The notes beneath the pieces are model-generated. The model did no database searches. It had not been told where the DNA came from and was given only the letters and a program-made list of their open reading frames with translations. 64,000 nt of DNA, taken from Eutreptiella sp. 'Long Island Sound 2002' (lineage: Eukaryota > Protista > Euglenida). The DNA lies in assembly GCA_964036045.1 (NCBI GenBank), contig OZ038378.1, forward strand, positions 172,794,001-172,858,000. The letters run 5' to 3'. Position numbers and translations under genes: made by a program. Shown here piece by piece: positions 48,261 through 64,000 of the stretch (positions are counted from its first letter, which is position 1; each line of letters starts with the position of its first letter).

Positions 48261-49061
48261 TTGCAACTTTCTTGAGCTGGGGCAGTTTGGGTCACCTAAT
48301 TCTAAGGGCGTTTCCAAGGGGTGTGCTTGGGGGCTCTTCGGGGGGAACATAGTCTAAAAGTAGCGCGCCGGGCGCGCGCCGGGCAAACATTCCCCCAAAG
48401 CCTAGTCGGCAAGTGCGTTGCACAACTGAGTTCGGGCACTCCTCTCCCCTCCCCTCCCCTCCCAGAGTGGTCCATTAGTTTGCTTCATGTACTGTGACTC
48501 ACAGCCATGCGACGAGCGATGGCTTGGCTCCGCTTGCTCCAAATGGCACATGACTTCCACCTCCGTCACACCGAAAGATTTTCTCTGATGTGTTGTCTGT
48601 GGATAGCTGAGCGAGTCAAACACCTCCGCCAACAATGTCCAAGCGCCAAGAAAGCATGCCGTCATCGCCCAGGCCTGCTTTGGAAGCAACCCTGCATTGA
48701 CACACATGTGCGCTAAGCGGCACCATGTGACGCCATGGCCATGCATTTCCTCTGGGAAAGTGCCAGCCAACGTTAATGGGTTTGAGTACCCACATCTGAT
48801 TTCCTTTGTACCTCCAAATAGGTTTTGCCATTAAGGTGCGGTGGTTGCCTGCCACACCAGAGAGCGTCTCCTCTTTCGTTGTATGTCAGCTATGGGTCTG
48901 CGCCTTGGGGTGCCCCGTCTACCAGGGATCCAGTGTATTACATACTTGAGTCGCCCAATTTCCAAGAACTATGTTGAGTATTCATGAACACTTCAAGTCA
49001 GCCCCCCCAAAAAAGATTGTTTGTTCCCTGTTTCTGGATCCTCAACGATACTGTTGTTGGA

Positions 49062-49232
49062 CATTGTGGAACCTGTTGGCTGGTTGAGACGGTTGTACCT
49101 GGTGGTTGGTTCACATTGTTGTACCTGGTGGTTGATTGGCATTATTTTACCTGGTGGTTGGTTGGCATTATTTTACCTGGTGGTTGGTTGGCATTATTGT
49201 TCCTTGTGGCTGGTTGACAATCTTGTACCTGA
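49062..49232. repeat. 26-bp tandem repeat (ACCTGGTGGTTGGTTGGCATTATTTT), about 6 degenerate units
   Basis: Head-to-tail units with no unique spacers. Confidence 0.85.
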
Positions 49233-49668
49233 TGGTAAGGAGCATTCTGGCCCCTACAACAGATTCCGCCAGGGGTACCAGAGGTCAGGCGCATTAAAGG
49301 ATGTTTCTGATGCTGAACTGGGTGAACCAATCACTTTCCAGGTGCTGCGATGGAGGAAGGGACACCCTAGTCAACGAGCTATCTGTCACATCTTTGTACT
49401 CCTTCTGTCCAATGTGTGGGCCCTGGACAGTTTTCCTGCTGGTTGACCACCAGTGGTCACTGGTCAACCACCATTCATCAATCACCAACCGCCGTGGGTT
49501 GAGCTCCCAACAGCATTAAGTGACCATTGCGCACTGGCCAACCGCCAGTCCGCAGAGTTTTACCTGCTGTGCCCTGAGGCCCGACATTGTACCAGACCAG
49601 CACCCTTTCTTTAAATTCTTTGAATTCTTAAAAAGTCTTGGTCTTTGGTTGTACAGACCGATTTTGCA

Positions 49669-50133
49669 ATGGGAGCAGGATTACTTGAAGACCCAATTGC
49701 GCCTCAGGAGGAGCCGCTGTACCAAGCAGCGGAGGACCAGATCCCTGAGGAACAAGTGGTGTACCAGGAGAGCGCCGTGTACGAGGAGAGGGCCGCCTCT
49801 GCCTACGACAACTATGAGGAGCAGGAGCAACAGGCGATTGTGGCTGCGCAAAGGTCGCTGGTCCCATCGATCCCGGAGGACGCGCCTGTGTTCACCGGAC
49901 CTGTGTACAACTTGGAGTCGTATGACAATCTCCCGGCCCCCTTGGAGAGTCATCAGCACATGGAGCAGATTGAGGGGAACCCGGACGACCCGTTTGCCCC
50001 AACGCGGTACCGCCTGGTCACGACCCACATTCTGCCCCCGCTCATGGTCTACGCCCCACCCACCAATCCGATCCGAGAGCGGCCCATCAGGAAGCGAGTG
50101 GCGAAAAAGGCCTGGGATGCGCCACTGGGGGAG
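49669..50133 (+). CDS. Putative first coding exon (acidic Q/E/Y-rich)
   Basis: U-rich tract then gtacag| at 49656, ATG at 49669, GAG|gtgtgc donor in phase 0 matching the acceptor at 51118. Confidence 0.62.
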
Positions 50134-53100
50134 GTGTGCGCGGCTGTCCCCGGCCTTCGGTATTGGTTGCCCCAGGACGTGCATCTCTCTGGTTTGTTCT
50201 GCAATGGTCATGAGGTCTTGAGACCCAAGTTCGTGGTCCATTGGCAGTGGACCGCGGACGGTGGGTGATTGGTGGACGGCGGTTGTTATTTGGAGTGAGG
50301 GAAAGTCTGTTGCCGCCTGGTGGTGAGTGGGTAGCGTTTGCTTGGAGCTCAGAGACTGCCGACAGATTGTGGTAGGCCACCACAGAGCCAGCCCTTTTTC
50401 TGCGGGCAGCCAAGGTCAGTCAGGCAGGGCTACCACGAACGAACCAGTGCTTGTCCTTTCCAGGATGCCCTCGTGACAGCCATGACAGAACATGGCCACC
50501 AGGCCAAAGTTGTGTACCCCCCCCCCCTCTTGTGCAAGCACCGCCTTGTCTAAGCACCAGGACCCAGTCTGACTGTCACTTTTACCGAATTTTCTGACCT
50601 CGGCTTTTACGGTCAGAAAGTAGGCAAAGCGTGATTGTGTGCCAATTGTAGAGGGAGAGAGGGGCTGTTTCATGTTTGTGATGTGTCCTCCTGCTCATAA
50701 CAACATTCTGCTTGGTACCGCACCCCACTGCTCTTTGTTTTGGTGTGATTTTCAGCCATGACTAATGTCGTTAGCCCTGGCTTGGCTGTCACGTACGTCC
50801 GGTCCACCGGTGAGCATGCGCCTGCCACTATCATTGGTCGCTCTACTCGTGGGGAAGATTGCACAACCGAGGAATTACAACTTGGGAGCGCCGCCCCACC
50901 AAAACCGCCCTGTTACGACTATTGTGCTTAGGGTGAGGTATGGGCAGGTTTTCGGGACATGCTTTCTTTGGTACCGCGCGTCACGCGGTTGCACCGCCTT
51001 GTCTAAGCACCAGGATCTGACCGTCACTTTCCTGACCTGGCTGGTGCTTGCGCAAGGGGGGGGGGGTATTACAGCGCACTTTTTCCTGATCACTTTGTGT
51101 GAGACCGGGACGGTGCAGATCCGACGATTTGCATCGGGAGTATTGCTCGAGTCACACGCAATGTCTCCCGTTGCCTCGCATCGCCCTTTGCAGTTGGTGC
51201 TGGATCCCCTGGCTCCCGATGGCATTGCTGTCAAACTGCTGTTGCTGGAGGCGCAGGCTCCGTTCGTGATCCACGAGGTGGATCCCTCCCGCGAGAGCTG
51301 CGTTTCTGTCGCCAACCCGCAAGGCAAGCTTCCGTGCTGGCTGGATGCAGACGCCACATGCATCTGGGAGGCCAACGCCATCATGCGGTACGTTTGCGAC
51401 AAGCACGACCTGGACCCACAGTTCTACTTCTCGGACGACGACAATCTGAAGTGGCGGACAGACATGGTCTCCACAATCTTTCATGACCCTCTGCAGTTTT
51501 CCCCCTCACCCTAGCTCGTGTGTACACCCTCACAATTACCATCTGTCCGTTCTGGGGGGACTGTCCAAGGGGTCGGGGTAGTGCCTGGTTGATCCTTGAT
51601 TTTCAACTGCAATAAGTATCTACCTCCCTCACACCCTTGTCACTGTTCCTTCCCAGATCTTTGTGGGCTGAGTCGGGATATAGGCTCACAGTTGTACAAG
51701 AGCACGCTTGTGCAATATGTTCTTCCCTTTATCTACAAACCGTGGACAAAGCAACGGGTATTAGGGGGGGTTTCTACATACAATTGATTTCGGACATCCT
51801 CCACCAAAGTTTCATCACTGAGGGGTGCACCCCCTCGAAAAAGGCACCGGATGGTGCTAGGGCTACTATTCGTGCCGAAGTTATGAAATATGGCTGGGAA
51901 GAGAATAAGTCTGGGCAATGGCGTTTTTGTACTTGATTGGGAAGAGGAAACGTTTGTCCAAGGGGAAGGTGCTCTGGGGGGGGATTGCCACTCTCCCGAA
52001 ACCATTTTTACCAAAACATATTCACAGCTTGATGCCCGTGCTGATGCTGCCTTCCTACGGACGTCGTTTGCAGATATGCCCTATGCTTTTCTTGCCCATT
52101 CAATCAACAATGTGTCCTTTTGGTTCCACTGGTTAGACAGCCTTGATTGCAGATATATCACTGAGGTGAGTTGCGAAGATACTTTCATAGGAAGGAAATC
52201 ATATTAAGGAGCAATAGTCCATGGGGCTTCTACCCATTCCAGCCCCCAGACTCACCCAAGGGGCAAGTCGCGCGGGTTTCTGGAGAGCTGCCGCCCTGTA
52301 TGACTTCTACCCATTCCAGCCCCCAGACTCACCCAAGGGGCAAGTCGCGCGGGTTTCTGGAGAGCATGCGAAGATACTTTCATAACGTTGACCCTGCTGA
52401 CGTTAAGCACCATTTCCAAGAGGCCAGCATGTGGTTGTTCACACGCAAGCGGTGGGGCATGCTGGCATATGCAACATCGAGTGGTCTATTCACTGGGAGT
52501 GTCAGTGTGCGTGCCGCACTGGTGGGTTAATGCTACAAATTTCCAGTACATTTTCCATGATTGAATGACAGAGATAGTTGCATTTGAAATGGTCAGTAGT
52601 ACCCACATCGTTGTTGTGGGGGGTCTGTGGGAGTGGGCGGGGTGCATCCCACTGGGAGGTGCCTCTTCTGCTCAGGCTGATCTGCAATAATTGTGCACAG
52701 TTCCGCCGCCTAGAGACTCTCTGCATCTCAGACTCAAGGGTCATCCAATGGGAAAATGCAAGTGGAAAATGCCTTTCAAAGTGCTGCCGTCTGTTCTCCT
52801 CCTGCGTGGCACATGTGCTCTAGCGTTATGACTGCATGTGCAGAAGTCTGGGCCTGCATTTCAAGTTTGGCAAGGAGTATGCGGCAATCAATTAATGGCT
52901 CCAACATGTGGCAAGGCAGTTTTGCTACGTGATATGAGAAACCATGCACGAAAAATATGGAAAAAAGAGAGCCGGCCCTCAAAGCCCCCTCCCAGGGGGG
53001 GGGGGGGGGTTGGAAAAGGGGCTCAAGGCCCCCCACCCCCAAGTAAATTTTCCGGAAGTCCAATGGAGTCTCACCAGTGGAACCAAATTGTGGAATGAAT

Positions 53101-56100
53101 GAGCAAGAAAAGCATAGGGTTGATACATGATCCAGAGCACCGTGACTCTGTTACTACAACTGCCCATCTGGGTGCTGGAGAGCACCCTCCAAGCTTCATG
53201 GTGTGGGAACGACTGAATGTGCACCCTGTCAGTGCTGGCAGGGGAGCGGATGCCGCAGATGCAGTAGCTGCAATTGAGCAGTACAACGTACGACAGATAT
53301 TCCACTGTCACCCAGAAAACTACATCACCCATTCCTCCCTTCCACACAGACACTTCCCCACCACACACAGCCCAGAAGCGCACCGCCACAAAACACGAAT
53401 AAGCGTGTCAGACTGGAAGTACCAACCAGCACACTTGCACCACCTGAATGCCCCCCCCCCCCCCATGAGGGTGGGGCATTATTGGGCCCTTGGTTTATCC
53501 CAAAGCCTGGGTGGTGAGTCCCAGCAACCCACCAACCCACAACCCCCTCTAGCCTGGTTCAGCACACTGCTGATGACTGCCATCAGCAGCCCTCTAAAAA
53601 CCCTTCCAGACCCCCCCCCCCCCATTTTCTTCCCAGCACGCCACCTGTTGCTTGCATACTCGCCCCCCCTTGCTTGTGCGCTTGTCTGCTTGTTTCAGCA
53701 CCTGATGCTGGCAGGCTCACCTTCTTATGCAGCCTTTGGTCACTAGAACCCCTGTGCAGCCCTTTGCGACCCCCCCACAACCCTGTCCCACTCTGTGCAG
53801 GCGCTGGACTGGTGCCACACGTCCCTGACGAGCCATATTCGGCACGTGCTTGACCCCGAGGCGCACGAGTACGAAGATCTGTCGGACATGCCTGGCGGTC
53901 GGTACGCGCTTGAAACGGTACGCTCCCCGATGCGGTGCGGTCTGTGCGCGGGGCAGATAGCGAGGGATTGTGCGTCATCGTCGGACTATGAATGCGGGGT
54001 CCGCCCCCCCCCCCCCCCGGCGATTGGGGCAACGAACCCACAGCGGATCGGGATGGCGGACCGCGGCAGACCTGGTCCTCCGGGTCGAAACGTACACAAG
54101 GCGTGTCCTGAAGGAACGGGTGTCCTCGAGGACGTCCCTCTTGGCTCGCGGTCACTGGCCGACCTCCGGCGCTCAACCGGCAAGCGCCGGCGGTTGACTG
54201 CCAACCGCTCGTGGTCACGAGCGAAAATCTGTCGGTTACCACCGGACGCCGGCTCGTATTTGCCAACTGCTGTCGGCTAAACACCAGCGGCCATTGGCAG
54301 AGATGTATCAGAAGAGGGGGCGGGGGGAGGGGGTCTGGAACCCAAAAGTTTGTGTACAAATATGGCCCGAATCATTTTACGAAGAGGTAATCCCCAATCA
54401 GTCTTACAATCTCCTGTGCACGTGCCGCCAACAGCCGTGTTTGCGCAACTGGTCGGGAACGTAGCTGTCGAATGCTTTGGCACAAAGGTGTGGCTTTGAA
54501 TTGGAGGTCCTGGTTTGTTACACATCGTGTCTACTGCACCACCTCAGACCCTCTTTGACAGCAGATTGACCTGGGCACGGGAAGGATGGTTTGGGCCCGG
54601 CGGTGTTGGTTGACTGTCGCCGCACGCGTTCCTTTGTACGTCCCGTGCAGAAGTATCACGGGGCATTATCCCCCCCCCCCCCCCTCTTGAGGACGCTGCT
54701 GGATGTCAGCGAGGCTTTTGGAAACCAGCGGATTTTTTCGGTTAGGGCGCTGGCTCCCCGTCATCGCTCAACAGCCAACCGCCGGTGGTCAGCGTTACGT
54801 ATTCGACCGGCCAAACTTTCTCGGTTGGCCACCAACCGCCGTCAGTTGACCCCCCGTCTGCCGCTGGTCCGCGCTACATTTCCTGCCGAAGCGTTGTGCC
54901 CCATGCCCCCGCACGTCGCAGCGCCGGGGGTTGATTTTCCTGAATGGAAGCCGCATCTGCTTCTCCACCGGGTCGCCTCATCTTCAGGACTACCGCGTGC
55001 TGTCGGACTTCTTCCTGCGCGAGACCCCGTTCATCGGCGGAGAGGAGCCCAACATCGCAGACTACGCCATCTGCCTGCAGCTTCTGATTCTGTACTCGAC
55101 CAGCCATCCCCCTCCCGACCGCATCCGGCAGTACCTGCACAACGCGGCGGAGCACGTTGGCAACTGGAACGAGATCACGCTCCCCATCCGCGAGTTTTGC
55201 ATGTTCCGGCAGAAGGAGCTGCGGCAGGTGCGGAGGACCGGGGGCGGAGGGGTTTGTGAGGGGGGCCCAGGAGGACAGCGAGGGCGGGCTCTGGTGGAGG
55301 GGGGAGTCTTGGGTGTAAGCCATCCACCGCCCCCCCCTTTATCCGACACTGATTGCTGATGTCTGACTGACAGCTACTGACTGTGATTGTCTGACTGATG
55401 TAGTCAGACATGATGTTCTGTTTTCTGTTTCAGACACAGTGTGTGTCTTGAGGTTTAACCAGGTTTGGCATAGAGAATAAAGATGCACTTATGCCTGACT
55501 GTGGAGTGCATTACCTTTGGTTTGCATTTGTCTGCTTTTTAATTAGGTCCCCCCCCCCCCCGGAGAGAGAGGGTCAGAATGAGCAGTGGCGAGAGGCCAA
55601 TAGGCGCCGCCAAAGGCAAACAACCTAATACCGAGGCTTTGTGCCAACCCCCCCCCACCCCGGTACACTGTAAGGCACCGGTCTTGAGGGCCCCCCTTCC
55701 CCCTCCTCTGAGGCCCAAAATGGTGGTGTGGTTCAGGCCGTTCCTTAGGCGGGGGGGGGGGGGGATTTAGTATGGGAAAAATACCGCCTGGAAAAATTTA
55801 GCACGCCCAAGTGTAGCGCAATTTTTCTCATCACTTTTAAGGATTGTGGCGATTTTTTCCGTTCTTTTTTCTGGACATCAAGTTCAAGCTTTGTACCCTC
55901 TGCTAAACAGTAATGACAGGATGTGCTGGTTGCTCAGTTGTGGATGCACCGTCCAAGAAACGGCGGACCTGAGTTGCCTTTTTTTTTTTGAAGGTGCCTA
56001 TGATTATCTGTGTCTGTAGGCGCAGATTTGTGGCAATGATGTATTTGATCTCTTTTCCACCGTTCAAGAAACAGTGGACCTGAGAGCCAACCTGGGGCAT

Positions 56101-59100
56101 TGCCCTTCACCATGGAAAACTGTAGCGCAATTTTTCCCATCACTTTTAGGATCGCAGCGGAATTTTTCCCGTATCAAATTTTTCAGGACAAAAAGTTTCC
56201 CTTACTAAATTTTTGCCCCCCCCTCGAGGCCGGAAGAGGTATAATTTCCCTCCACTACAGGACAAGGGGTATCTTATGGAAATGCACCTTGGGAGGTGTG
56301 GGGTCGGGCAAGACAGAGGGATGTTTACACAGGTCCTGTACCCACGGGTTTGCTCTTCTTTGGGGGCACTTTGGGAGGGGGTGAAAGGCAAAACCCATTC
56401 CAAGTAAACCCGCGGAAAAAGTAGCGCGCACCGCGCGGCGCAGATACTCCCATTTAAGGGCCTCCACGGTTTCCTTTTCTTTGCTGTTGCTGCTTTGCCT
56501 CAAGGACCGCCTCCAGAGACCGCTCGAGTCACCGTCAAACTGCCGCCGGTTGCCGTCCGACCCTCGAGTGGCATTGGGCGGACGCCAGCCGGCACCCCCG
56601 TCCGCAGGGGAGGCCAAAGCACTAAGCACAGCCCTGGGACGGGCTCCAGGCTTTCCAACCCATGCCCGGATGACAGACACGAACCGAACAGTGAGGCCGT
56701 GCACATGCAACACAATGCAGGGCTGAAGTCACGCACACATCTGGGAGGGGGTTTTCACAGCCAAACGATGTGGCACTGGGTGCACCAGCCAGTGTTTGCC
56801 ACTGCAAAGTTTGTAAAATTCCAGGGGTCATATGGACCCCTCTCCAACCGCAATGTACCCCCCATTTTGAACCCCCCCCCCCCAACCAAGTTCAGTGCCG
56901 AAGTGGTTTCAGGTGGGTGGGTGGCTCGGCCTGGGGGAGGGGGGGGTCCTTCGGACCCTCCCCCCCCCTCCCCTTCTGTGGTTAAGCAAATCCGCCTGCC
57001 CCATACATCCGCACGTGCCGCTTGAGTCGGACTGGTATGGGAAAGATAGTCGTCATCGTCATCGGAGGGGGCGGGGCTCCGGGGAGAATGGGTGACACCA
57101 GCGGCTCGGGGGAAAGGGGAAGTGGGTGCGACACTCGGGCAGTCGGTATGCGCGCATCCGCTGCCCGTGCACCAACGCAGGCGCAAGTCGACATGGAGCG
57201 CCTGAAGTATGAGGACGACATCGCCCGCCGCCATCAAATGGCCGAGCAGATGACGGCGGACACGATCCAGCGGCGCCAAGAGAGCGAGGATCAGATGCGG
57301 GCTCAGTGGGAGGCGGACGCGCGGCGGCGGGAGGAGGAGGACCGCCGATGGCGCGAGGACCAGGTCGCTGCACGTGGAGTGTATGCCCGTGGGGGAGGGG
57401 GTGCTGATACGTGCGGTGGACGCCGCCCCCGGTGTCCAGGTCCCCCGCGCCCGGCGCTGGCCCGGTCCGTAGCTGGTACACCACAACCCCCACAATCTCC
57501 AGATCCACTCATCCGTAAGTGATCGTCATCACTGCGCCGCAGCAGCAGTGGCACGTGGCTGCCTGTCGCCCCTACGGCCGACTGCTGGCAGATCAGCCTC
57601 TGCAAACGGGAAGTCACTCAACATGGCCCCAGAGGCCAGTAAAACATCGATGGCCTCGGTGAGCCAGAGACCCCGCCCCCACCCCCACTCCACGGCTTAG
57701 TGGCGACTGTGACCTATCAGGGGGGGGGGGTCACAGGCCCACAACAAAGTTTTGGTACCTACAATCGACCTCCAATTCTGGGCCCCTTTGATAAATTTCA
57801 TTTTTGTCCTGAGGAAAAATTTTCTGATGTGGGTGGGTGGGTGGGTGGGTGGGTCAGGCGGAGGAGCCCAGGCTGCCATTTCGCCCGCCCCCCCCCCCCC
57901 TCCCCGGGCCTGTACTGCGGTGCAGAGCTACAGACACCACCCGATTCGCCACCCGGGATGCATGCGTGGCCGTGGTGCCTGTGGGATGAGAGAGTACGAC
58001 GGCCCCCATCCAGCCCCATCTCTGAGGTGGAGAATACGGGAGACGGACTTGGGACCTGCAGACAGCAGCTCTCTTGGCCTAATGACCGAGAGTCACAGCT
58101 CGTCCTCCTCCCCACAAAAAAGAATCAGAAAAAATGAAACGGCTCCACAGGATTCTGTCCCGTCCCTCGCTGCGCCATTCCATGCCATTCCATACTCCTG
58201 ACATTCCCAACCCACACCACACCACCTCACGGCATCCCACGTCGATCCTGCGTCCCCCATCCTCAATTCCAACTGCAGTCTGCACAATCTGGGGGTCCTG
58301 CAATGTGTCGCGTTACACTGTGTAATTCCAAGAAGTGGACATGGTGCATCACCTCTGCGCTCTTAGGACACGGGTGCCAGCTCAAGTTTTAGGCAGAAGG
58401 ACAGCACGTAGCCATTTCTTAGAAGGTAGCGGTGAGACGTAGAATTCTGCTCATTCTTAGTGGTAAATTTCGTAAATTGTTCTTTGCTTCGCCACTTGGG
58501 GTCACAAGGCCCAAGCAACCTATCTTCACACTAAATTCTTGTGTGTTGGGTTTTTTGTTTGGTTGAGCTGTTGAGTGACACCGTCCTTTCTTTGATTTTA
58601 CACCATTTTCTGAGGGATCTTGCGCCGTTTTTTTTGAAAGGAAATTTACTCCATTTTTTGGGGAAATTTACACCAATTTGTGTAATCTGCGGGCCGAGGG
58701 CTGAAAGCCCTATAAACCTCCGTAAATAATAGGCGTGAGTGTACGTCATGGGGAAGAAAATGTTCCATTCCGCTTTGCAGCTCAAGCACTGGGGGCTGCC
58801 CTTTTGCACAGCCTTTGTCCCGAGAGCAGTTTTAGCAGACCTTCGCCCATCCCCTCTTTTTTTGGAGGGGCTCAAGCATCCCCCCCCCCCCCCGAGGAAT
58901 GCCTTGGAAAAGGGGGAGGTATAGTCCCCTGCAAACCCTTCTGTAGGCCCTGTGGTTCAACCCCCTTTCTGTGGGCTGAGTAAGTGAACCAGCCCCCCCC
59001 CCCCCCCGCCGGCATCGGCATCGGCATCGGCATTTGTCACCAACAGCAATTCCTCCCAACCCCATCCAACCACTTTCTAACCGCTCCTAACACCCGTGCT

Positions 59101-62100
59101 TGGCTCCCTGGCCCCGTATGTAACTGATTCAGCTTGTCGCTGGCCAAGCACAACCCCCGCCCCGCCCCCCAAACCTGGGCCCAATTTCCTCGATTTGCCC
59201 CGATTTTGTGCCCTGATTTGTTGGAATTTAGGGGCCCTGGTAATGATTGACGTTTCTTAGTGTCCAGGTATCTTATTTCTGGCTGCTTTTACCTCCATGG
59301 TTGCCTGTCATATTTGTGGTTGCAAACGCTCCCGCTGATGGTGCTGATTAAAAAAAAACGGTACTGGACGAAGCCCTTTGACATGCTTCACCAGCAGCCA
59401 GTGATCATCCATCTGCAGGCCACCTCTTGTACTGCGTTCAGCAAGCCCATGAACCAGTTTTTGACAGGATTGCAGGTGAACATTGTCCCGAAGGATAAGA
59501 AGCAAACCTCTCGGATTGGCTATTTGTTGGCAATGGTCAATACCAGTGTTCTTGAATGGGCAAAGTCATTACATAGAAAATGTCTATATGTGCAATGCTC
59601 TGTGCGTAGGAACGGGCATTGGGTCCCCCCACAGATTCTTGGAGTAGGAATGCAATAGGGAAAGGCTGCACGTCTGAAAACCTGCTGAAAGTGGTCCCCC
59701 AAATTATTGCCCCGATTTGGTGGAGAATCCCCCCTCATTTGGAGGGCTGGGGTTGCAAGCCTGGCCGCCCTTGGTATGAGGTCATTTAGGGTGCTTCTTG
59801 GCCCCTGCAGAGTTCACCTGGGGTCATTCCTCAGGAGCTATGTTTTTGTTGTATTTATTTGAATGACGGCTTGAGGCCTATGGGGTCAGTGGGTGACAGC
59901 TAGTGGTTGGACAGTACCCTCCAACCTCCGGAGGTTGGCTGTGACAAAGGATGCCATCTGAAAGACAGCCGACAGGGTTTTGCGGCTCATCAGTAGAGTC
60001 GGATGCTGGTTGACAACGGCTTTGCATCCGCTGGGAAGGTGCTTTCTTGCTGTGAAGGACAGCACTGTCTTGACCTGCCCCTGTGCACAATGCACGGGAG
60101 GCACCCTCTGTGGGCTGCGGGCGGGATATGTTTGGCATCCGCTCCCCCCCCCCCTGTGTTGCACAGGATGCGAAGGTACGCGCAGATTGGGAAGCCAAGC
60201 GGCGTGCGGACGCAGACAAGCGCAAGGGCTGGGAGGCAGACCAGGTGGGGACTTTGGAAGCAGAGCAGAAGCGGTTGATGGAGGAGCGTCGCAAGCGTCT
60301 TGAGGCAGAGCAAGCGTATGTTCACTGTAGCCCCGACATGTGGTTTGGCAGGGACCATGGAGTTAAGGCGGTTTTGCCGTCGCGCTGGTGAGGAGCTCGG
60401 CCGGTGGTAGTGGTCCGGTTGCCGTTTCCGGTGGTATGGCTGGGGAAGTAGAGTTTCTGGTGGCTTCGCCGGAAGCAGGGCGTGCCCGGCACCTTGTGGC
60501 CGCGGTCCTGGTGCTCATTGCGCTTTGGATGCGAGGCTGGACGGTTCGCTATGCCCGAAACTGTTGTGGCTGCGATTTTGTGTGTGTTGTGTTTCACGGT
60601 CGTTGTCATTGTTGTCGACGTCGTCGCCGTCGTTCATTGTTGTTGTCGTTATTGTTTTTTGTTGCGGTGGTGGTTGTGATCGTGGTGGTGGTAGTTGTTG
60701 TCGTGGTTGTCGTTGTTGCGGTCGTATTGGTGGTTGTAGTTGTGGTTGTGGTTGTGGTTGTGGTGATCGTTGTGGTTGTGGTTGTGGTTGTGGTGATCGT
60801 TGTGGTTGTGGTTGTGGTTGTGGTGATCGTTGTGGTTGTGGTTGTGGTTGTGGTGATCGTTGTGGTTGTGGTTGTGGTTGTGGTGATCGTTGTGGTTGTG
60901 GTTGTGGTTGTGGTGATCGTTGTGGTTGTGGTTGTGGTTCTGGTTGTGGTCAAAGCACTAAGCAATACAACCCTCTCCGGGTCCAGGGCCTCGGCCCCAT
61001 CCCCATTGTCTCACTGGGCCAATCGTCCACTCGTGTGAATGGGGGGTCCGGCTTTGACAAGGCGGGGGGTGCGTCCTGCAATCGGCGTGGCCCACCCTCC
61101 AGGTGGCAGGAGGAGTACTTCGAGAGGATGCGCAAGCTGCGTGAGGAGGATGAGATGAGGAGGGCTGAGATGTCACGGAAGGCATCCACGATCAGCACTG
61201 CCTCGACTGCTACTACTCAGTTGCGGCCACAGGTATTGTCGCGTGCGGCGGTTGTGTTGCTTGACATCCATTTCTGTACTTCACGATTCTTTCAGTGGAG
61301 GATCTTGCTGTGGCACCGCCCGACCGTGGGGGGGGGGGGGGCTCATGTGGTCAGGCCTGAATTAGAATTTTTTTTGGCAGTGCCCCCCCCCCCCCCCCGA
61401 CCAAAGGGACATCATGAGAAAAAACGAAATTTAACATCGGGAAAATCTGGTCGGGCCATTTTTGGTACACAAACTTTTGGGTCCAGACCCCCCCCCCCCA
61501 CACAACACCCCCTTTTAATTCAGGTGTTGGCCAACACTTCGGGTTTCTGCATTTGGGTCTGTGTCATGGAGGCGTGCCAGGCTGTGTGTGGTGCTGGGGG
61601 AGCGTGTGTGTTGTGGGGGGGGGGGGGGGGCATATGGTGGACGTGGAGGGAGTGGGCAGCGAACACCGTAGACCGACCCCCGCAACAACCGGCACAGCCC
61701 CCGTGCGCCAACTACCGGGTCCCGCTACCGCAGCAACGACACCACAAGGAACACCGGCCGCAGCGGCCGTCAGAAAGCGTTGACCCGAAGCAGCACGCGA
61801 AGAGATGAACGGGTGGCTGCCCAGGGCCCCGTAAAGGCACCGCAACCCGACGAAATGTCACAAAAGGGGGGGGGGGGGCAAAAACAGTCAAACGACCCCG
61901 GCAACAACCAGCACAACCCCAATACGCCAACTACTGGGCGCCGCTGACGCACAAACGGCGCAGCATGCCACATCCAGCACAGCCCCAGCACACCAACCAC
62001 TGGGCTCCGCGAACATGGAAACGACATCAGTGAGGGCACCGGCCGCAGCGGCCGACAGAAAGCAGCGACCCGACGCAACATGCGAAGGGAAGAACGGGTG

Positions 62101-63530
62101 ACTGTCCAGGGCCCCGTAAAGAAACAACAACCCGACGGAATGTCACACGGGGGGGGGGGGGGGGGATTGAGGGTGGAATGTTGTGTCACGGCCGTGCCCT
62201 TGTGCAGTTGGGCGTCGAGATCAAGATGCTGGACGACAGCAAGGGGAACAAGGACTGCGTGGTGGCCGTGGAGCGGGTGGTGTCTGGCGGACCGTGCGAC
62301 AAGGCGGGGCTGAAGGATGAGGACGTCATTGACCGCTGGAACGGGGAGCGGATCTACTCCAAGGCGGCGTGGACTGACAAGGTGTGTGACGGCAAGACGG
62401 CCACCCCATCCCCCCTCCCTCCTCCCCGGGAAATTCAGATATTCCAAAAAGCCAACCGTAAAAAAAATACCCCTCCGGAAGCCCGTGCCCCTTCACGCCG
62501 CGGGTTTGGGGTCCTGAACTACACCGACCCCCCCCCCCCCCCCCCCAATGGCAGGGCGCCACTTCGTCAGCTGTGGAGTCCGAGATGGTGCACAGCCCTA
62601 AGTCCCAGACCCCGGCAGGGGGCCGACAGGCAGAGTTTTGGCATTGCAGAGGCTGGGCATTGCCACGAAGGAGAGGCACGGGGATGCTATTATTTGGCTC
62701 CCAAAAGAAGGGCTTCCGGGGCTCTTTGTGTTGAGGCTGAACACCCACCGAATAGTGGAGGGCAGTGGGCAGTCGCGTGCAGGCCCTTGCCTGCTGCACA
62801 CGGACCCACCCACCCCCGTCCTGCCAACCGGCACACTCCCCCCTGCCGTGCCGTGCACAGGATCCCGCCTGCCGTGCGTGGGACCCCTGCATCAGGGCTG
62901 TCCTTAAGAAGCCAGTTTTTTTTCTTTTGGTTAAGGACAGCCCTTGAGGACAGCCCCCAGGGACCGCCAACCGCCAACCGCCACCAATCACCAACCGCCG
63001 CCAACTGCCAACCACCAACTGCCAACCTTTGAAGTAGAGAAGGTCCCATGACCATGAAGTGGCCGGGGATGGACCGGGCGCTGTTTGTGCCGCGAGGCCT
63101 CTCCCCTGGCGGCTTCAGAGTGCCAATGGAACCCTCCCACACCCACTCCTCCGTCTCGGGCGGGCGGGGGTGGGGCCCCGGGTGGGGGAGATCAGAGCGG
63201 GGAGTCCGGGGGGTACAGGCGCAGGGACCGGGACCAGGGGCCGCAGGGCGATGGTGTGCCTTGGGTGGGCCCAGTCGCCCGCTTGCCATCCGCCTCCTCC
63301 TCGCGCCCCGTTTCCAGGCGAAGCACGCCAAGATCGGGGAGGTCGTCACGCTGACGGTGTACCGCGACGGGGAGGCCCAGGACATGCAAGTCACCGTCGG
63401 GGGCACTACGAAGACCCTGGGCTCCACGCACAAGGTCAAGAGCCGTGGGTCCGTGTCCCACAACATCCGATACCAGAAGCCCTCCATGCGACAGCCCTCC
63501 ATGGCCTCCAAGCCTTCGATGAAGCGGTAG
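49669..63530 (+). CDS. GST-fold / coiled-coil / PDZ fusion protein. Exons: 49669-50133, 51119-51466, 53801-53917, 54988-55227, 57181-57363, 60167-60315, 61103-61232, 62208-62381, 63318-63530. About 672 aa
   Basis: All 8 introns are GT-AG and phase-compatible (0,0,0,0,0,2,0,0), ending in TAG at 63528-63530. GST-N: [20 protein letters not shown]: [14 protein letters not shown]-rich coiled coil. PDZ: [45 protein letters not shown]. The link to the first exon is the least certain part. Confidence 0.82.
50517..51066. mobile_element. TA-flanked MITE with a captured coding module
   Basis: TIR (C)n..CTTG(T/C)GCAAGCACC; TA flanks; GCACCGCCTTGTCTAAGCACCAGGA repeated near both ends. Confidence 0.72.
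51119..51466 (+). CDS. GST N-terminal (thioredoxin-fold) domain exon
   Basis: Encodes [18 protein letters not shown] and [31 protein letters not shown]; ATG|gtctcc donor. Confidence 0.88.
53801..53917 (+). CDS. GST C-domain exon (part 1)
   Basis: ctgtgcag|GCG, ACG|gtacgc; encodes ALDWCHTSL. Confidence 0.82.
54988..55227 (+). CDS. GST C-domain exon (part 2)
   Basis: atcttcag|GAC, CAG|gtgcgg; encodes [24 protein letters not shown]. Confidence 0.88.
57181..57363 (+). CDS. Coiled-coil exon
   Basis: aacgcag|GCG, CAG|gtcgct; E/R/Q-rich. Confidence 0.8.
60167..60315 (+). CDS. Coiled-coil exon
   Basis: ttgcacag|GAT, AAGC|gtatgt (phase 2). Confidence 0.8.
60600..60950. repeat. (GTT/GTG)-rich microsatellite with a 30-bp higher-order unit TGTGGTTGTGGTTGTGGTTGTGGTGATCGT
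   Basis: Direct reading; about 6 copies of the 30-mer at about 60742-60921. Confidence 0.92.
61103..61232 (+). CDS. Coiled-coil/linker exon
   Basis: ccctccag|G phase 2 matches the previous exon; CAG|gtattg. Confidence 0.8.
61661..62165 (+). repeat. Two tandem diverged copies of a G-tailed interspersed repeat (61661-61878 and 61879-62165)
   Basis: Shared CACCGGCCGCAGCGGCCG, CCAGGGCCCCGTAAAG, CAACCCGACG..AATGTCAC followed by a G-run. Confidence 0.8.
62208..62381 (+). CDS. PDZ domain exon (part 1)
   Basis: ttgtgcag|TTG, AAG|gtgtgt; encodes [26 protein letters not shown]. Confidence 0.87.
63318..63530 (+). CDS. PDZ domain exon (part 2), terminal
   Basis: gtttccag|GCG; encodes [24 protein letters not shown]; TAG stop. 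Confidence 0.87.
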   Translation, partial: AKHAKIGEVVTLTVYRDGEAQDMQVTVGGTTKTLGSTHKVKSRGSVSHNIRYQKPSMRQPSMASKPSMKR

Positions 63531-64000
63531 GCGAGCCCGGCCGGGGGCCGAGGGCATGCGGAGCAGGGGACCCAACGTGAGACGGAGGGGCTGAGGGTGT
63601 TGGGCGCAGGCGAGCCCATGCAAGGCCCTAGGGCTGGTGGGCACAGAGGAGCCAGTGCAAGGGCTGAGTTTTCCTCTTTCTTTTCATTAAGAACAGCCGC
63701 AGATTTCAGGTGGAAGAACTGCAGTTAGCCGACAGCGGTTGGCAGTGAACGGTACGTCGCAGGTACTCGGCGGCGGCGGGTGGTTAAGCGACGCCATTGG
63801 CGGGCAACCGACAGCAGTGGTTGGTCCGCCGGCTGGCCCTCTGTGGAGGCTCAGGCACAACGGAGTCCAGCCGTTTCCCGTTCTGTGGCGCCACGGACAT
63901 CCCTGGCTCCATCGGAAGCAGTGCCCTCTCCGATCATATTCATACATCAGAAGTATGCCACACCCGCGTGTCCTCACCACACCCTCTGCCGCGTGCATCA

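Follow-up and report, generated by a model that had tools for sequence, protein, structure and literature searches.

We have characterized a locus that is a real, transcribed, single gene of a marine euglenid alga, and its product joins a GST fold, a long charged helix and a PDZ domain in one polypeptide. The window, by which we mean the whole stretch of 64,000 nucleotides that was analysed, comes from Eutreptiella sp. 'Long Island Sound 2002'. Based on the homologues collected, this GST-charged helix-PDZ architecture is conserved and has so far been found only in euglenids. On balance, we lean towards the reading that the protein is an adaptor built on a dimeric, non-canonical GST fold and bearing two PDZ arms, in which the GST hub would no longer be a standard transferase. 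In such an adaptor, the GST fold would have lost the standard glutathione transferase work and would serve as a dimerising hub. A stiff helical spacer, about 20 nm long if fully helical, may extend from each of the two C-termini of this hub and carry a PDZ domain at its tip. With a PDZ domain on each arm, the dimer would act as a bivalent adaptor, holding its clients, or bridging them, via their C-terminal peptides.

The gene spans positions 49669-63530 on the forward strand and consists of nine exons (Table 1). All introns are of the GT-AG type, the phases agree, and the coding sequence of 1944 nt encodes a product of about 647 aa. The sequence-only reading of this DNA had proposed a phase-consistent nine-exon model, and this model holds, since its positions 49669, 55227, 57181 and 63530 all match the present borders. 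The parts that it had claimed, namely an acidic N-terminus, the GST N and C domains, an E/R-rich stretch of about 150 aa and a PDZ domain, were all found where it had placed them.

Table 1. Exons of the GST-charged helix-PDZ gene (positions in the window)
Exon	Position	Strand	Length	Content and borders
1	49669..50133	+	155 aa	Start codon, variable acidic stretch, conserved N-terminal block, end L-G-E
2	51194..51466	+	91 aa	GST N-terminal thioredoxin-like domain; acceptor AG/TTG, donor ATG/GT
3	53801..53917	+	39 aa	GST C-terminal domain begins, helix alpha4, A-L-D-W-C-H...
4	54988..55227	+	80 aa	Remainder of GST C-terminal domain, ...N-W-N-E-I-T
5	57181..57363	+	61 aa	E/R-rich helix, first part
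6	60167..60315	+	149 nt	Charged helix, second part; phase 2 end
7	61103..61232	+	130 nt	Helix end W-Q-E-E-Y-F-E-R-M, then Ser/Thr-rich hinge to R-P-Q
8	62208..62381	+	58 aa	PDZ first part including L-G-V-E; borders by GT-AG and homology
9	63318..63530	+	70 aa + stop	PDZ second part, post-PDZ motif, short basic tail

The start of exon 1 is the first ATG downstream of an in-frame stop. The conserved block of this exon reads P-V-F-x-G-P-V-Y-N-L-E-S ... T-T-H-I-L-P-P, and orthologues match positions 49840-50139 at 53-57% identity (tblastn). No Pfam family matched the block, and a word-index search, which has limited sensitivity, found it nowhere outside its own protein family. The donor of exon 1 (GAG/GT at 50133/50134) was picked from homology, as L-G-E-L runs without an insert in 10 homologues; the same L-G-E/L junction ruled out a donor at 50214 and the 27 extra aa that it implies. 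An acceptor of exon 4 at 54922, with 22 additional aa, was also ruled out because the exon begins at 54988 in all RNA contigs, and the insert implied by this in-frame AG is absent from all homologues. By tblastn, the identity to orthologues is 62-74% for exon 3, 60-73% for exon 8 and 52-56% for exon 9. The exon 7 junction, W-Q-E-E-Y ... R-P-Q/x-G-V-E-I-K, is identical in layout to that of the orthologues, and the post-PDZ motif in exon 9, G-G-T-x-K ... H-N-I-R-Y, is conserved. The junctions of exon 1 with 2, 2 with 3, 7 with 8 and 8 with 9 are based on GT-AG borders, phase, homology and the length of the RNA contigs. Eight long open reading frames on both strands of the introns have no Pfam family, so that no nested gene or transposon frame was seen, and a search of 49000-64000 against Rfam gave no structured RNA at the gathering score.

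Whole-protein work was performed with the orthologue P0002, and the exons of the window were handled singly. Exon 2 matched Pfam GST_N_2 (E 9.8e-8), and in the ESM Atlas it found only generic GST_N clusters. Among PDB entries, the best match of the family profile is human GSTT1 (2c3n; E 2.5e-15). Because the GST part of a first full-length AF2 model was badly packed (rmsd 8-10 A in Foldseek), the fold was taken from a separate domain model built on a deeper alignment; for the GST part of P0002 (residues 104-312), this model has a pLDDT of 90.4 and a pTM of 0.89. This domain model contains beta1-alpha1-beta2-beta3-beta4-alpha3, and the alpha2 helix is absent. In Foldseek, its top match is again 2c3n (TMq 0.80), with the delta-class 3vk9 at TMq 0.84, over about 210 columns. 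The Pfam GST_C models gave no match in the window or in the orthologues; the all-helical GST C-domain is supported by the P0002 fold model and the profile alignment. The GST part is a complete, theta-like fold that resembles theta, delta and epsilon GSTs in its beta-alpha N-domain with a cis-Pro and its all-helical C-domain; an alpha3/alpha4 dimer interface like theirs is predicted for it, and human GSTT1-1 (2c3n/2c3q) is its closest likeness in profile and fold. None of the solved GSTs that matched carries the N-terminal block, the 150-aa charged helix or the PDZ domain of the euglenid protein.

As judged from the alignment with GSTT1, the canonical glutathione site is altered in the GST part. 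The sequence-only reading had placed Ala at the catalytic Ser and Glu-Ala at the glutathione-binding Glu-Ser, with the cis-Pro kept, and the codons and the profile alignment confirm all three. Codon 51212 is GCT (Ala) within L-D-P-L-A-P-D-G and aligns with the catalytic Ser11 of GSTT1. Codon 51371 is GCC (Ala) within W-E-A-N-A-I, where Glu-Ala aligns with Glu66-Ser67, so that Ser67 of GSTT1 is also replaced by Ala. K-L-P lies on the K-V-P of GSTT1 that holds its cis-Pro. In addition, the alpha2 loop lacks four residues relative to GSTT1 in the profile alignment, including the position of His40, and no alpha2 helix is predicted. Based on these changes, we infer that the GST part may be a pseudo-enzyme. 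An Ala at the catalytic position, on its own, is no proof of inactivity.

We consider it unlikely, yet worth weighing, that the GST domain retains enzymatic activity, or works as a thiol-dependent redox protein, through a non-canonical site, with the PDZ domain bringing it to certain clients. Such an enzyme might use trypanothione or glutathionylspermidine, which are thiols of Euglenozoa, or another activating residue. On the one hand, the pocket is strictly conserved, with A-P-D-G and W-E-A invariant in the six type-1 orthologue sequences; exon 4 is the most conserved exon, with 74-76% identity to Euglena-type orthologues; and the type-2 paralogues retain the Ser. The alpha2 loop is also shortened at the place where canonical GSTs grip the glycine end of glutathione, and in trypanothione this glycine end is amide-linked. 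On the other hand, Ala is unable to stabilise a thiolate, and no lineage with the charged helix combines the Ser, the full loop and the Glu-Ser pair, all of which (the last as W-E-S) are kept in the nearest canonical GSTs. At the Ser and Glu-Ser sites, the lineages of the family read A/EA, S/GA, A/ES and A/GS. The glutathione-site residues that were lost thus differ between paralogue lineages, which looks like a relaxed constraint on glutathione chemistry. Since the pocket of the type-1 orthologues is invariant, it is under constraint and not in decay, and it may accommodate a different ligand. For the preferred adaptor, this invariance is a counterpoint, as is the Ser kept by the type-2 paralogues, because it points to retained ligand binding rather than a purely structural hub.

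Returning to the adaptor reading, its dimeric hub is in line with a complex prediction. Two copies of P0002 residues 100-440 scored 0.65 against 0.02 for the best control, a score that may echo the memory of the model for solved GST dimers and whose calibration is weak for eukaryotic proteins without an older solved relative. Among solved structures, 21 of 30 paired proteins and none of 23 single-chain proteins reach the mark for a dimer. The dimer runs shared at least 40% of contacts, and the pLDDT of the partner was at least 72. The predicted interface sets alpha3 (169-182, with interface residues from 167) against alpha4 (195-214), which is the classical GST interface. Such a predicted dimer would fit a scaffold role, in line with the idea of a dimerising scaffold put forward from the sequence.

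Non-catalytic GST folds are known as assembly modules in the translation machinery and in yeast nitrogen control, and in Ure2p the catalytic position is likewise Ala. By analogy with eEF1B-gamma, AIMP2/AIMP3, MARS/EPRS and Ure2p, the GST fold of the euglenid protein was probably kept for assembly and not for conjugation. The GST-like domain of eEF1B-gamma is among the fold matches (5dqs, 5jpo). However, theta, delta and epsilon GSTs outscore the scaffolds of the eEF1B-gamma/AIMP type in the profile and fold searches, so the likeness is functional only, and the euglenid protein is not a member of the eEF1B-gamma, AIMP, MARS/EPRS or Ure2p families. To our knowledge, neither a PDZ domain nor an ER/K helix occurs in any GST-fold scaffold of this group.

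The linker of about 150 aa between the GST and PDZ parts contains 51-60% charged residues, 16-21% core hydrophobics and 0-4% Gly plus Pro. The sequence-only reading had labelled it a coiled coil, and the scoring did not support this label, since no heptad periodicity was found and charge pairing favours an ER/K single alpha-helix (SAH). At 0.28, the best single-phase a/d occupancy of the linker does not exceed that of shuffled sequences (mean 0.28 +/- 0.04); exons 5 and 6 of the window give 0.28 and 0.21. In contrast, opposite charges at i/i+3 and i/i+4 score 0.53 against 0.17 +/- 0.05 in shuffles, about 7 SD above, on a home-made measure that is not a validated predictor of SAHs or coiled coils. 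ER/K SAH spacers are known from myosin VI and X and from caldesmon. The linker looks more like such a helix than like a heptad coiled coil: more than 50% of its residues are E, D, R or K, opposite charges are densely paired at i/i+4, and a heptad pattern is lacking, a likeness that is at the level of composition only. Compared with classic E/K SAHs, the euglenid helix has more R and Q.

If the linker were instead a true parallel two-stranded coiled coil, the protein would be a rod-shaped dimer zipped lengthwise without free arms. The linker runs without interruption over a long stretch and contains few helix breakers, the monomer model shows one unbroken helix (302-438), some windows of 28 residues reach an a/d occupancy of 0.5-0.62, and a dimeric GST hub would place both helices near each other. 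Nevertheless, the occupancy of the whole linker equals the shuffled expectation, and the small share of core hydrophobics together with the excess of charge pairs speaks against the zipped rod. Residues 302-440 also contribute nothing to the confident dimer interface, although this is a weak observation and not evidence of absence. We therefore regard the coiled coil as improbable, and the arms of the favoured adaptor would be free.

At the C-terminus, the two halves of the PDZ domain in the window each remain under the Pfam PDZ_2 gathering score (E 1.3e-5 for exon 8 and 2.2e-3 for exon 9) because an intron splits the domain. The orthologues pass the PDZ_2 cut-off of 27 bits, with scores of 36-57. 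The closest likeness is to PDZ domains of the HtrA/DegP type (Pfam PDZ_2, PDZ_6): the best sequence matches are PDZ1 of DegP and DegQ (E 3.6e-7), and by fold the domain matches those of AlgW and DegP (rmsd 2.9-4.6 A). The motif L-G-V-E at 62208-62219 is kept as V/L-G-V/L-E in every PDZ-bearing member, and G-V-E-I-K-M-L-D-D is almost invariant in the family. Considering its position at the start of the domain and its hydrophobic-Gly-hydrophobic pattern, L-G-V-E is the putative carboxylate-binding loop. Unlike HtrA and DegP, the euglenid protein has no protease domain, and its PDZ domain lies at the end of the helix and is followed by the family-specific motif. The C-termini of the Euglena orthologues are hydrophobic.

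These parts could also be combined in another way. The pocket may be retooled and not dead, binding a non-glutathione ligand such as glutathionylspermidine, trypanothione or a peptide. That would make the protein a thiol sensor or transferase specific to euglenids, with the SAH as a ruler that sets a fixed distance to the PDZ-bound clients. We give this proposal a low probability. The sequence-only suggestion of a cytoskeletal or flagellar role found no evidence in its support.

GST_N and PDZ_2 occur together in eight homologous proteins (P0002, P0039, P0040, P0041, P0042, P0043, P0005 and P0037), all of which align to each exon of the window. Among them, P0002 is a complete open reading frame of 665 aa from Euglena longa, P0042 is from Eutreptiella gymnastica, and P0005 and P0037 are from E. 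longa and E. gracilis. The same architecture is thus present in full-length cDNA-derived proteins of Euglena longa, E. gracilis and Eutreptiella and also in metatranscriptomes, and a fragment from Rhabdomonas contains the GST and helix parts. The layout is repeated at two paralogous loci of the same genome (C4 and C12), where the PDZ exons lie 13.2 kb and 11.8 kb, respectively, downstream of the GST exons on the same strand. The GST-helix-PDZ family forms one clade with 100/100 support and a long stem, and the closest relatives of its GST part are short canonical euglenid GSTs. A search with the PDZ part, by a word index of limited sensitivity, found only the family itself, and full-length P0002 gave no usable match in the ESM Atlas.

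From the sequence alone, no known GST-helix-PDZ architecture had been recognized; in agreement with this, it was described in no paper that we searched. No paper combined Euglena, 'PDZ domain' and 'glutathione S-transferase', and searches on euglenid PDZ domains and on a GST-like domain with PDZ and pseudoenzyme returned nothing relevant. The epiplastin paper mentions PDZ for cryptophytes only (PMC6212826). On the question of cellular location, EG_transcript_3472, the type-2 member of E. gracilis, appears in no main text and was not found in the supplements of PMC6366073 and PMC7403612, whose files may be incomplete.

Spliced RNA contigs from four runs (X1, X2, X3 and X5, from three studies) match the locus with zero mismatches. 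Their joints are 55227>57181 and 57363>60167, both GT..AG, and their loose ends yield 53917>54988 and 60315>61103: the loose end at 54987 carries the last 30 bases of exon 3, and the one behind 60317 is the beginning of exon 7. Pieces of the contigs cover exon 4 (54987-55223, in four runs) and exon 6 (60164-60317). The contigs reach 754-792 nt past exon 6, while exons 7-9 total 517 nt, which leaves room for these exons and a 3' UTR; the size of one contig of 2204 nt matches the coding sequence plus UTRs. The sequence-only reading had allowed that transcripts might end between 55227 and 57181, which would make two genes; instead, the RNA is spliced across this interval and ties the GST exons to the helix exons, and the homologous cDNA proteins hold GST, helix and PDZ in one open reading frame. 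Although the introns, at 1.0 to 2.8 kb, are both long and repeat-rich and the single-exon Pfam matches are weak, a GST gene and a following PDZ gene wrongly merged in the model can be dismissed with near certainty, because RNA contigs of four runs are spliced from exon 3 through 4, 5 and 6 to 7, eight cDNA-derived homologues have both domains in one frame, and homology is unbroken over every junction.

In summary, the GST-helix-PDZ family opens no long-standing question, and its gene model, now corrected and backed by RNA, is useful in genome annotation. The family presents a new use of the GST fold, which a long charged helix connects to a PDZ domain of bacterial type. It is conserved in phototrophic euglenids and in Euglena longa, which has secondarily lost photosynthesis, and the primary osmotroph Rhabdomonas has a fragment with the GST and helix parts; there are several paralogues per genome, and expression is seen in estuary communities. 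As its lineages differ in the glutathione-site residues that they lost, the family offers a natural series that could serve as a model for the change from enzyme to pseudo-enzyme. Our study indicates a candidate dimeric adaptor for euglenid cell biology, where few adaptors are known for the pellicle, the flagellar apparatus and plastid traffic.

By fold and sequence, the protein encoded on the + strand by the gene at 49669-63530 is a theta-like member of the GST superfamily. In a search of the PDB with a family profile, the top match was human GSTT1 (2c3n, E 2.5e-15). Pfam detected the N-terminal domain in its second exon, e2, whereas the GST_C models gave no score on single window exons or orthologues. 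The AlphaFold2 model of the GST part of P0002, the Euglena longa orthologue standing in for the window protein, showed every GST element except helix alpha2 (pLDDT 90.4, pTM 0.89). Over ~210 columns, this model superposes on GSTT1 with a TMq of 0.80, and with delta-class GSTs the TMq reaches 0.84. Therefore, the N and C domains are both complete despite the silent GST_C models, as the sequence-only reading had proposed.

In the profile alignment, Ala (codon 51212) occupies the position of GSTT1 Ser11, Glu-Ala (Ala codon 51371) that of Glu66-Ser67, and K-L-P that of the cis-Pro motif K-V-P, which agrees with the earlier claim of Ala at the catalytic Ser, E-A for E-S and a retained cis-Pro. A four-residue gap in the alpha2 loop lies opposite GSTT1 G-Q-H-L. 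Compared with catalytic GSTs, the window protein fails two residue-level features; the nearest canonical GSTs keep the Ser, the full alpha2 loop and W-E-S. Written as the residue at the catalytic Ser position and the pair at Glu66-Ser67, the site is A/EA in type 1 (including the window), S/GA in type 2, A/ES in P0038 from Eutreptiella gymnastica and A/GS in Rhabdomonas, and the shortened alpha2 loop is common to all family lineages. Such loss of different residues in different lineages is what would be expected if constraint on glutathione chemistry had relaxed. On the other hand, type 1 shows no variation in the altered turn A-P-D-G or in W-E-A, and e4 is the most conserved exon (74-76% identity); the GST domain, and perhaps the pocket, is therefore still under selection. 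This invariance would suit a site that is still active or retooled for thiol binding, such as that of the spermidine-linked thiols of Euglenozoa, but considering the lineage-specific losses, we regard such a site as unlikely.

The linker (e5-e7 and the matching orthologue part) contained 51-60% charged and 16-21% core hydrophobic residues by a home-made measure that is not a validated predictor, and Gly and Pro were nearly absent. Opposite-charge pairs at i+3/i+4 reached 0.53 versus 0.17 ± 0.05 in shuffles, ~7 SD above, whereas the best single heptad phase filled a/d at 0.28, no better than shuffles (0.28 ± 0.04). In the full-length model, residues 302-438 form one helix. Accordingly, for the linker we favour a spacer resembling an ER/K single alpha-helix over a classical coiled coil. 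Of the E/R-rich coiled coil suggested earlier, the charged helix stands, with no heptad repeat apparent by this measure; in terms of shape, a true coiled-coil rod is doubtful with a/d filling at the shuffled level.

The C-terminal PDZ domain was recovered by Pfam in the window and in eight relatives. By sequence its nearest matches are DegP and DegQ PDZ1, and by fold the PDZ domains of AlgW and DegP. Its start, G-V-E-I-K-M-L-D-D, contains the hydrophobic-Gly-hydrophobic carboxylate-binding loop and hardly varies across the family. The domain is likely a working peptide-binding module. The N-terminus is acidic, with no targeting signal obvious by eye, and the findings speak neither for nor against the cytoskeletal or flagellar placement suggested earlier. 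P0002 and the metatranscriptome or run-assembly proteins P0039 and P0040 carry long Ser-rich disordered tails, absent from the window protein and Eutreptiella members, with hydrophobic Met/Leu C-termini (…M-M-M-M, …E-M-L, …H-M-M). These ends resemble PDZ ligands, and self-binding or chains could be possible.

When 1.84 billion representatives were searched exhaustively with e2 (HMMER), no more than 36 matches had E < 1e-3, indicating that this GST domain is far from ordinary GSTs. The close matches are euglenid: P0002 (complete ORF, 665 aa), P0005 and P0037 (E. longa and E. gracilis), P0006 (Rhabdomonas costata, partial), P0038 and P0042 (E. gymnastica), P0039, P0040 and P0041 (metatranscriptomes or run assemblies) and P0043 (MMETSP). 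GST_N and PDZ_2 occur together in eight of them, and these eight align along all window exons, with the N-terminal block, the helix end W-Q-E-E-Y and a conserved post-PDZ motif included in the match. In P0038, the charged helix accompanies the GST part and there is no PDZ domain. The window e2 (type 1) is 64-72% identical to P0002 and P0039-P0042. Judging by how closely same-genome paralogues match P0038 and P0043, the source is probably a Eutreptiella-like marine euglenid. Maximum-likelihood analysis of the GST part placed the helix-bearing family in a single clade (100/100) with a long stem, adjoining short canonical GSTs, one from the euglenid Dinema. Database entries for the relatives are unnamed or only 'GST N-terminal domain-containing', and no paper linking euglenids, PDZ and GST was found in the literature searched. 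The architecture, found only in euglenids, is thus not common.

The nine exons total 1944 coding nt (647 aa) in a genome of 2.28 Gb. Three studies supplied RNA contigs from four runs (two of a cultured organism, two estuary metatranscriptomes); aligned to 54900-60400, these contigs showed no mismatches and were confined to e4, e5 and e6, with spliced GT..AG joints 55227>57181 and 57363>60167. Their loose ends before 54987 and behind 60317 match e3 and e7. The remaining four junctions are based on GT-AG borders, phase and a homology to cDNA-derived proteins that continues without a break. A 2204-nt contig has 875 nt upstream of e4 (855 nt for e1-e3) and 754 nt downstream of e6 (517 nt for e7-e9), which fits a full-length mRNA. 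The nine-exon model therefore holds, the first joint rejects a transcript end within 55227-57181, and 49669-63530 is one gene. A GST gene with a separate downstream PDZ gene is highly improbable, since spliced RNA links e3 through e4, e5 and e6 to e7.

Exons (all with GT-AG borders, consistent phase and sequence read), repeats and same-genome paralogues
Feature	Position	Strand	Remarks
e1	49669-50133	+	
e2	51194-51466	+	GST_N_2, E 9.8e-8 (single-exon search)
e3	53801-53917	+	last bases match RNA loose end
e4	54988-55227	+	RNA contigs
e5	57181-57363	+	RNA contigs
e6	60167-60315	+	RNA contigs
e7	61103-61232	+	first bases match RNA loose end
e8	62208-62381	+	PDZ_2 first half, E 1.3e-5 (single-exon search)
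e9	63318-63530	+	PDZ_2 second half, E 2.2e-3 (single-exon search)
Upstream tandem repeat	49071-49236		periods 26 and 52 nt (ACCTGGTGGTTGG...), 83% matches, ~430 nt upstream of ATG
Intron 2 direct duplication	~52170-52390		~90-100 nt; identical 19-letter peptide string twice in one frame
Intron 4 element	55350-55561		212 nt
Intron 6 minisatellite	60661-60950		GTTGTG-type, 6.4 copies of 30-nt unit, 99% identity
C15 run	54670-54684		
G17 run	62149-62165		
Contig C13 (L002)	4891995-4892243		type 3; encodes P0038 at 98.8% identity
Contig C4 (L003, L010)	18652585-18666102		type 2; encodes P0043 at 98% identity; unsplit PDZ exon 13.2 kb downstream of GST exon, same strand
Contig C12 (L004, L009)	24892110-24904142		type 2; unsplit PDZ exon 11.8 kb downstream of GST exon, same strand

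Euglenids also have non-conventional introns; introns 1-8 of this gene (50134-63317) are all conventional. The intron 4 element has many genomic copies (2866 first-look candidates, of which the 40 scored were mostly 98% identical) and an RNA contig depth of 100-800 versus 5-15 on the gene's exons. It had no match in Rfam and appears to be a short SINE- or MITE-like repeat that is young, abundant and transcribed. The intron 6 minisatellite is embedded in a less strict array (periods 12 and 18 nt), which accounts for long spurious V-rich and C/G-rich ORFs there. Homopolymer G or C runs of 10-17 occur in most introns and in none of the exons.

Two copies of P0002 residues 100-440 gave a predicted pair score of 0.65 versus at most 0.02 in three controls; of proteins with solved structures, 21 of 30 pairs attained the score mark and none of 23 single chains did. 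Contacts agreed between runs by at least 40%, with partner pLDDT of at least 72. The confident interface, alpha3 (169-182) against alpha4 (195-214) and 242-250, is the classical GST interface and includes no charged-helix residues. As solved structures include many GST dimers, the score indicates likeness rather than proof of such a dimer. In their working, the non-catalytic GST-fold scaffolds eEF1B-gamma, AIMP2/3 and Ure2p may be similar, but the window family is not their relative. We consider, with somewhat better than even confidence, that the window protein is a homodimeric adaptor. In this adaptor, the GST fold would have given up standard Ser-activated glutathione conjugation and been retained as a dimerising hub, possibly also binding a ligand. 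A stiff charged helix would project from each subunit, and the PDZ domain at its tip may bind the C-terminal peptides of client proteins.
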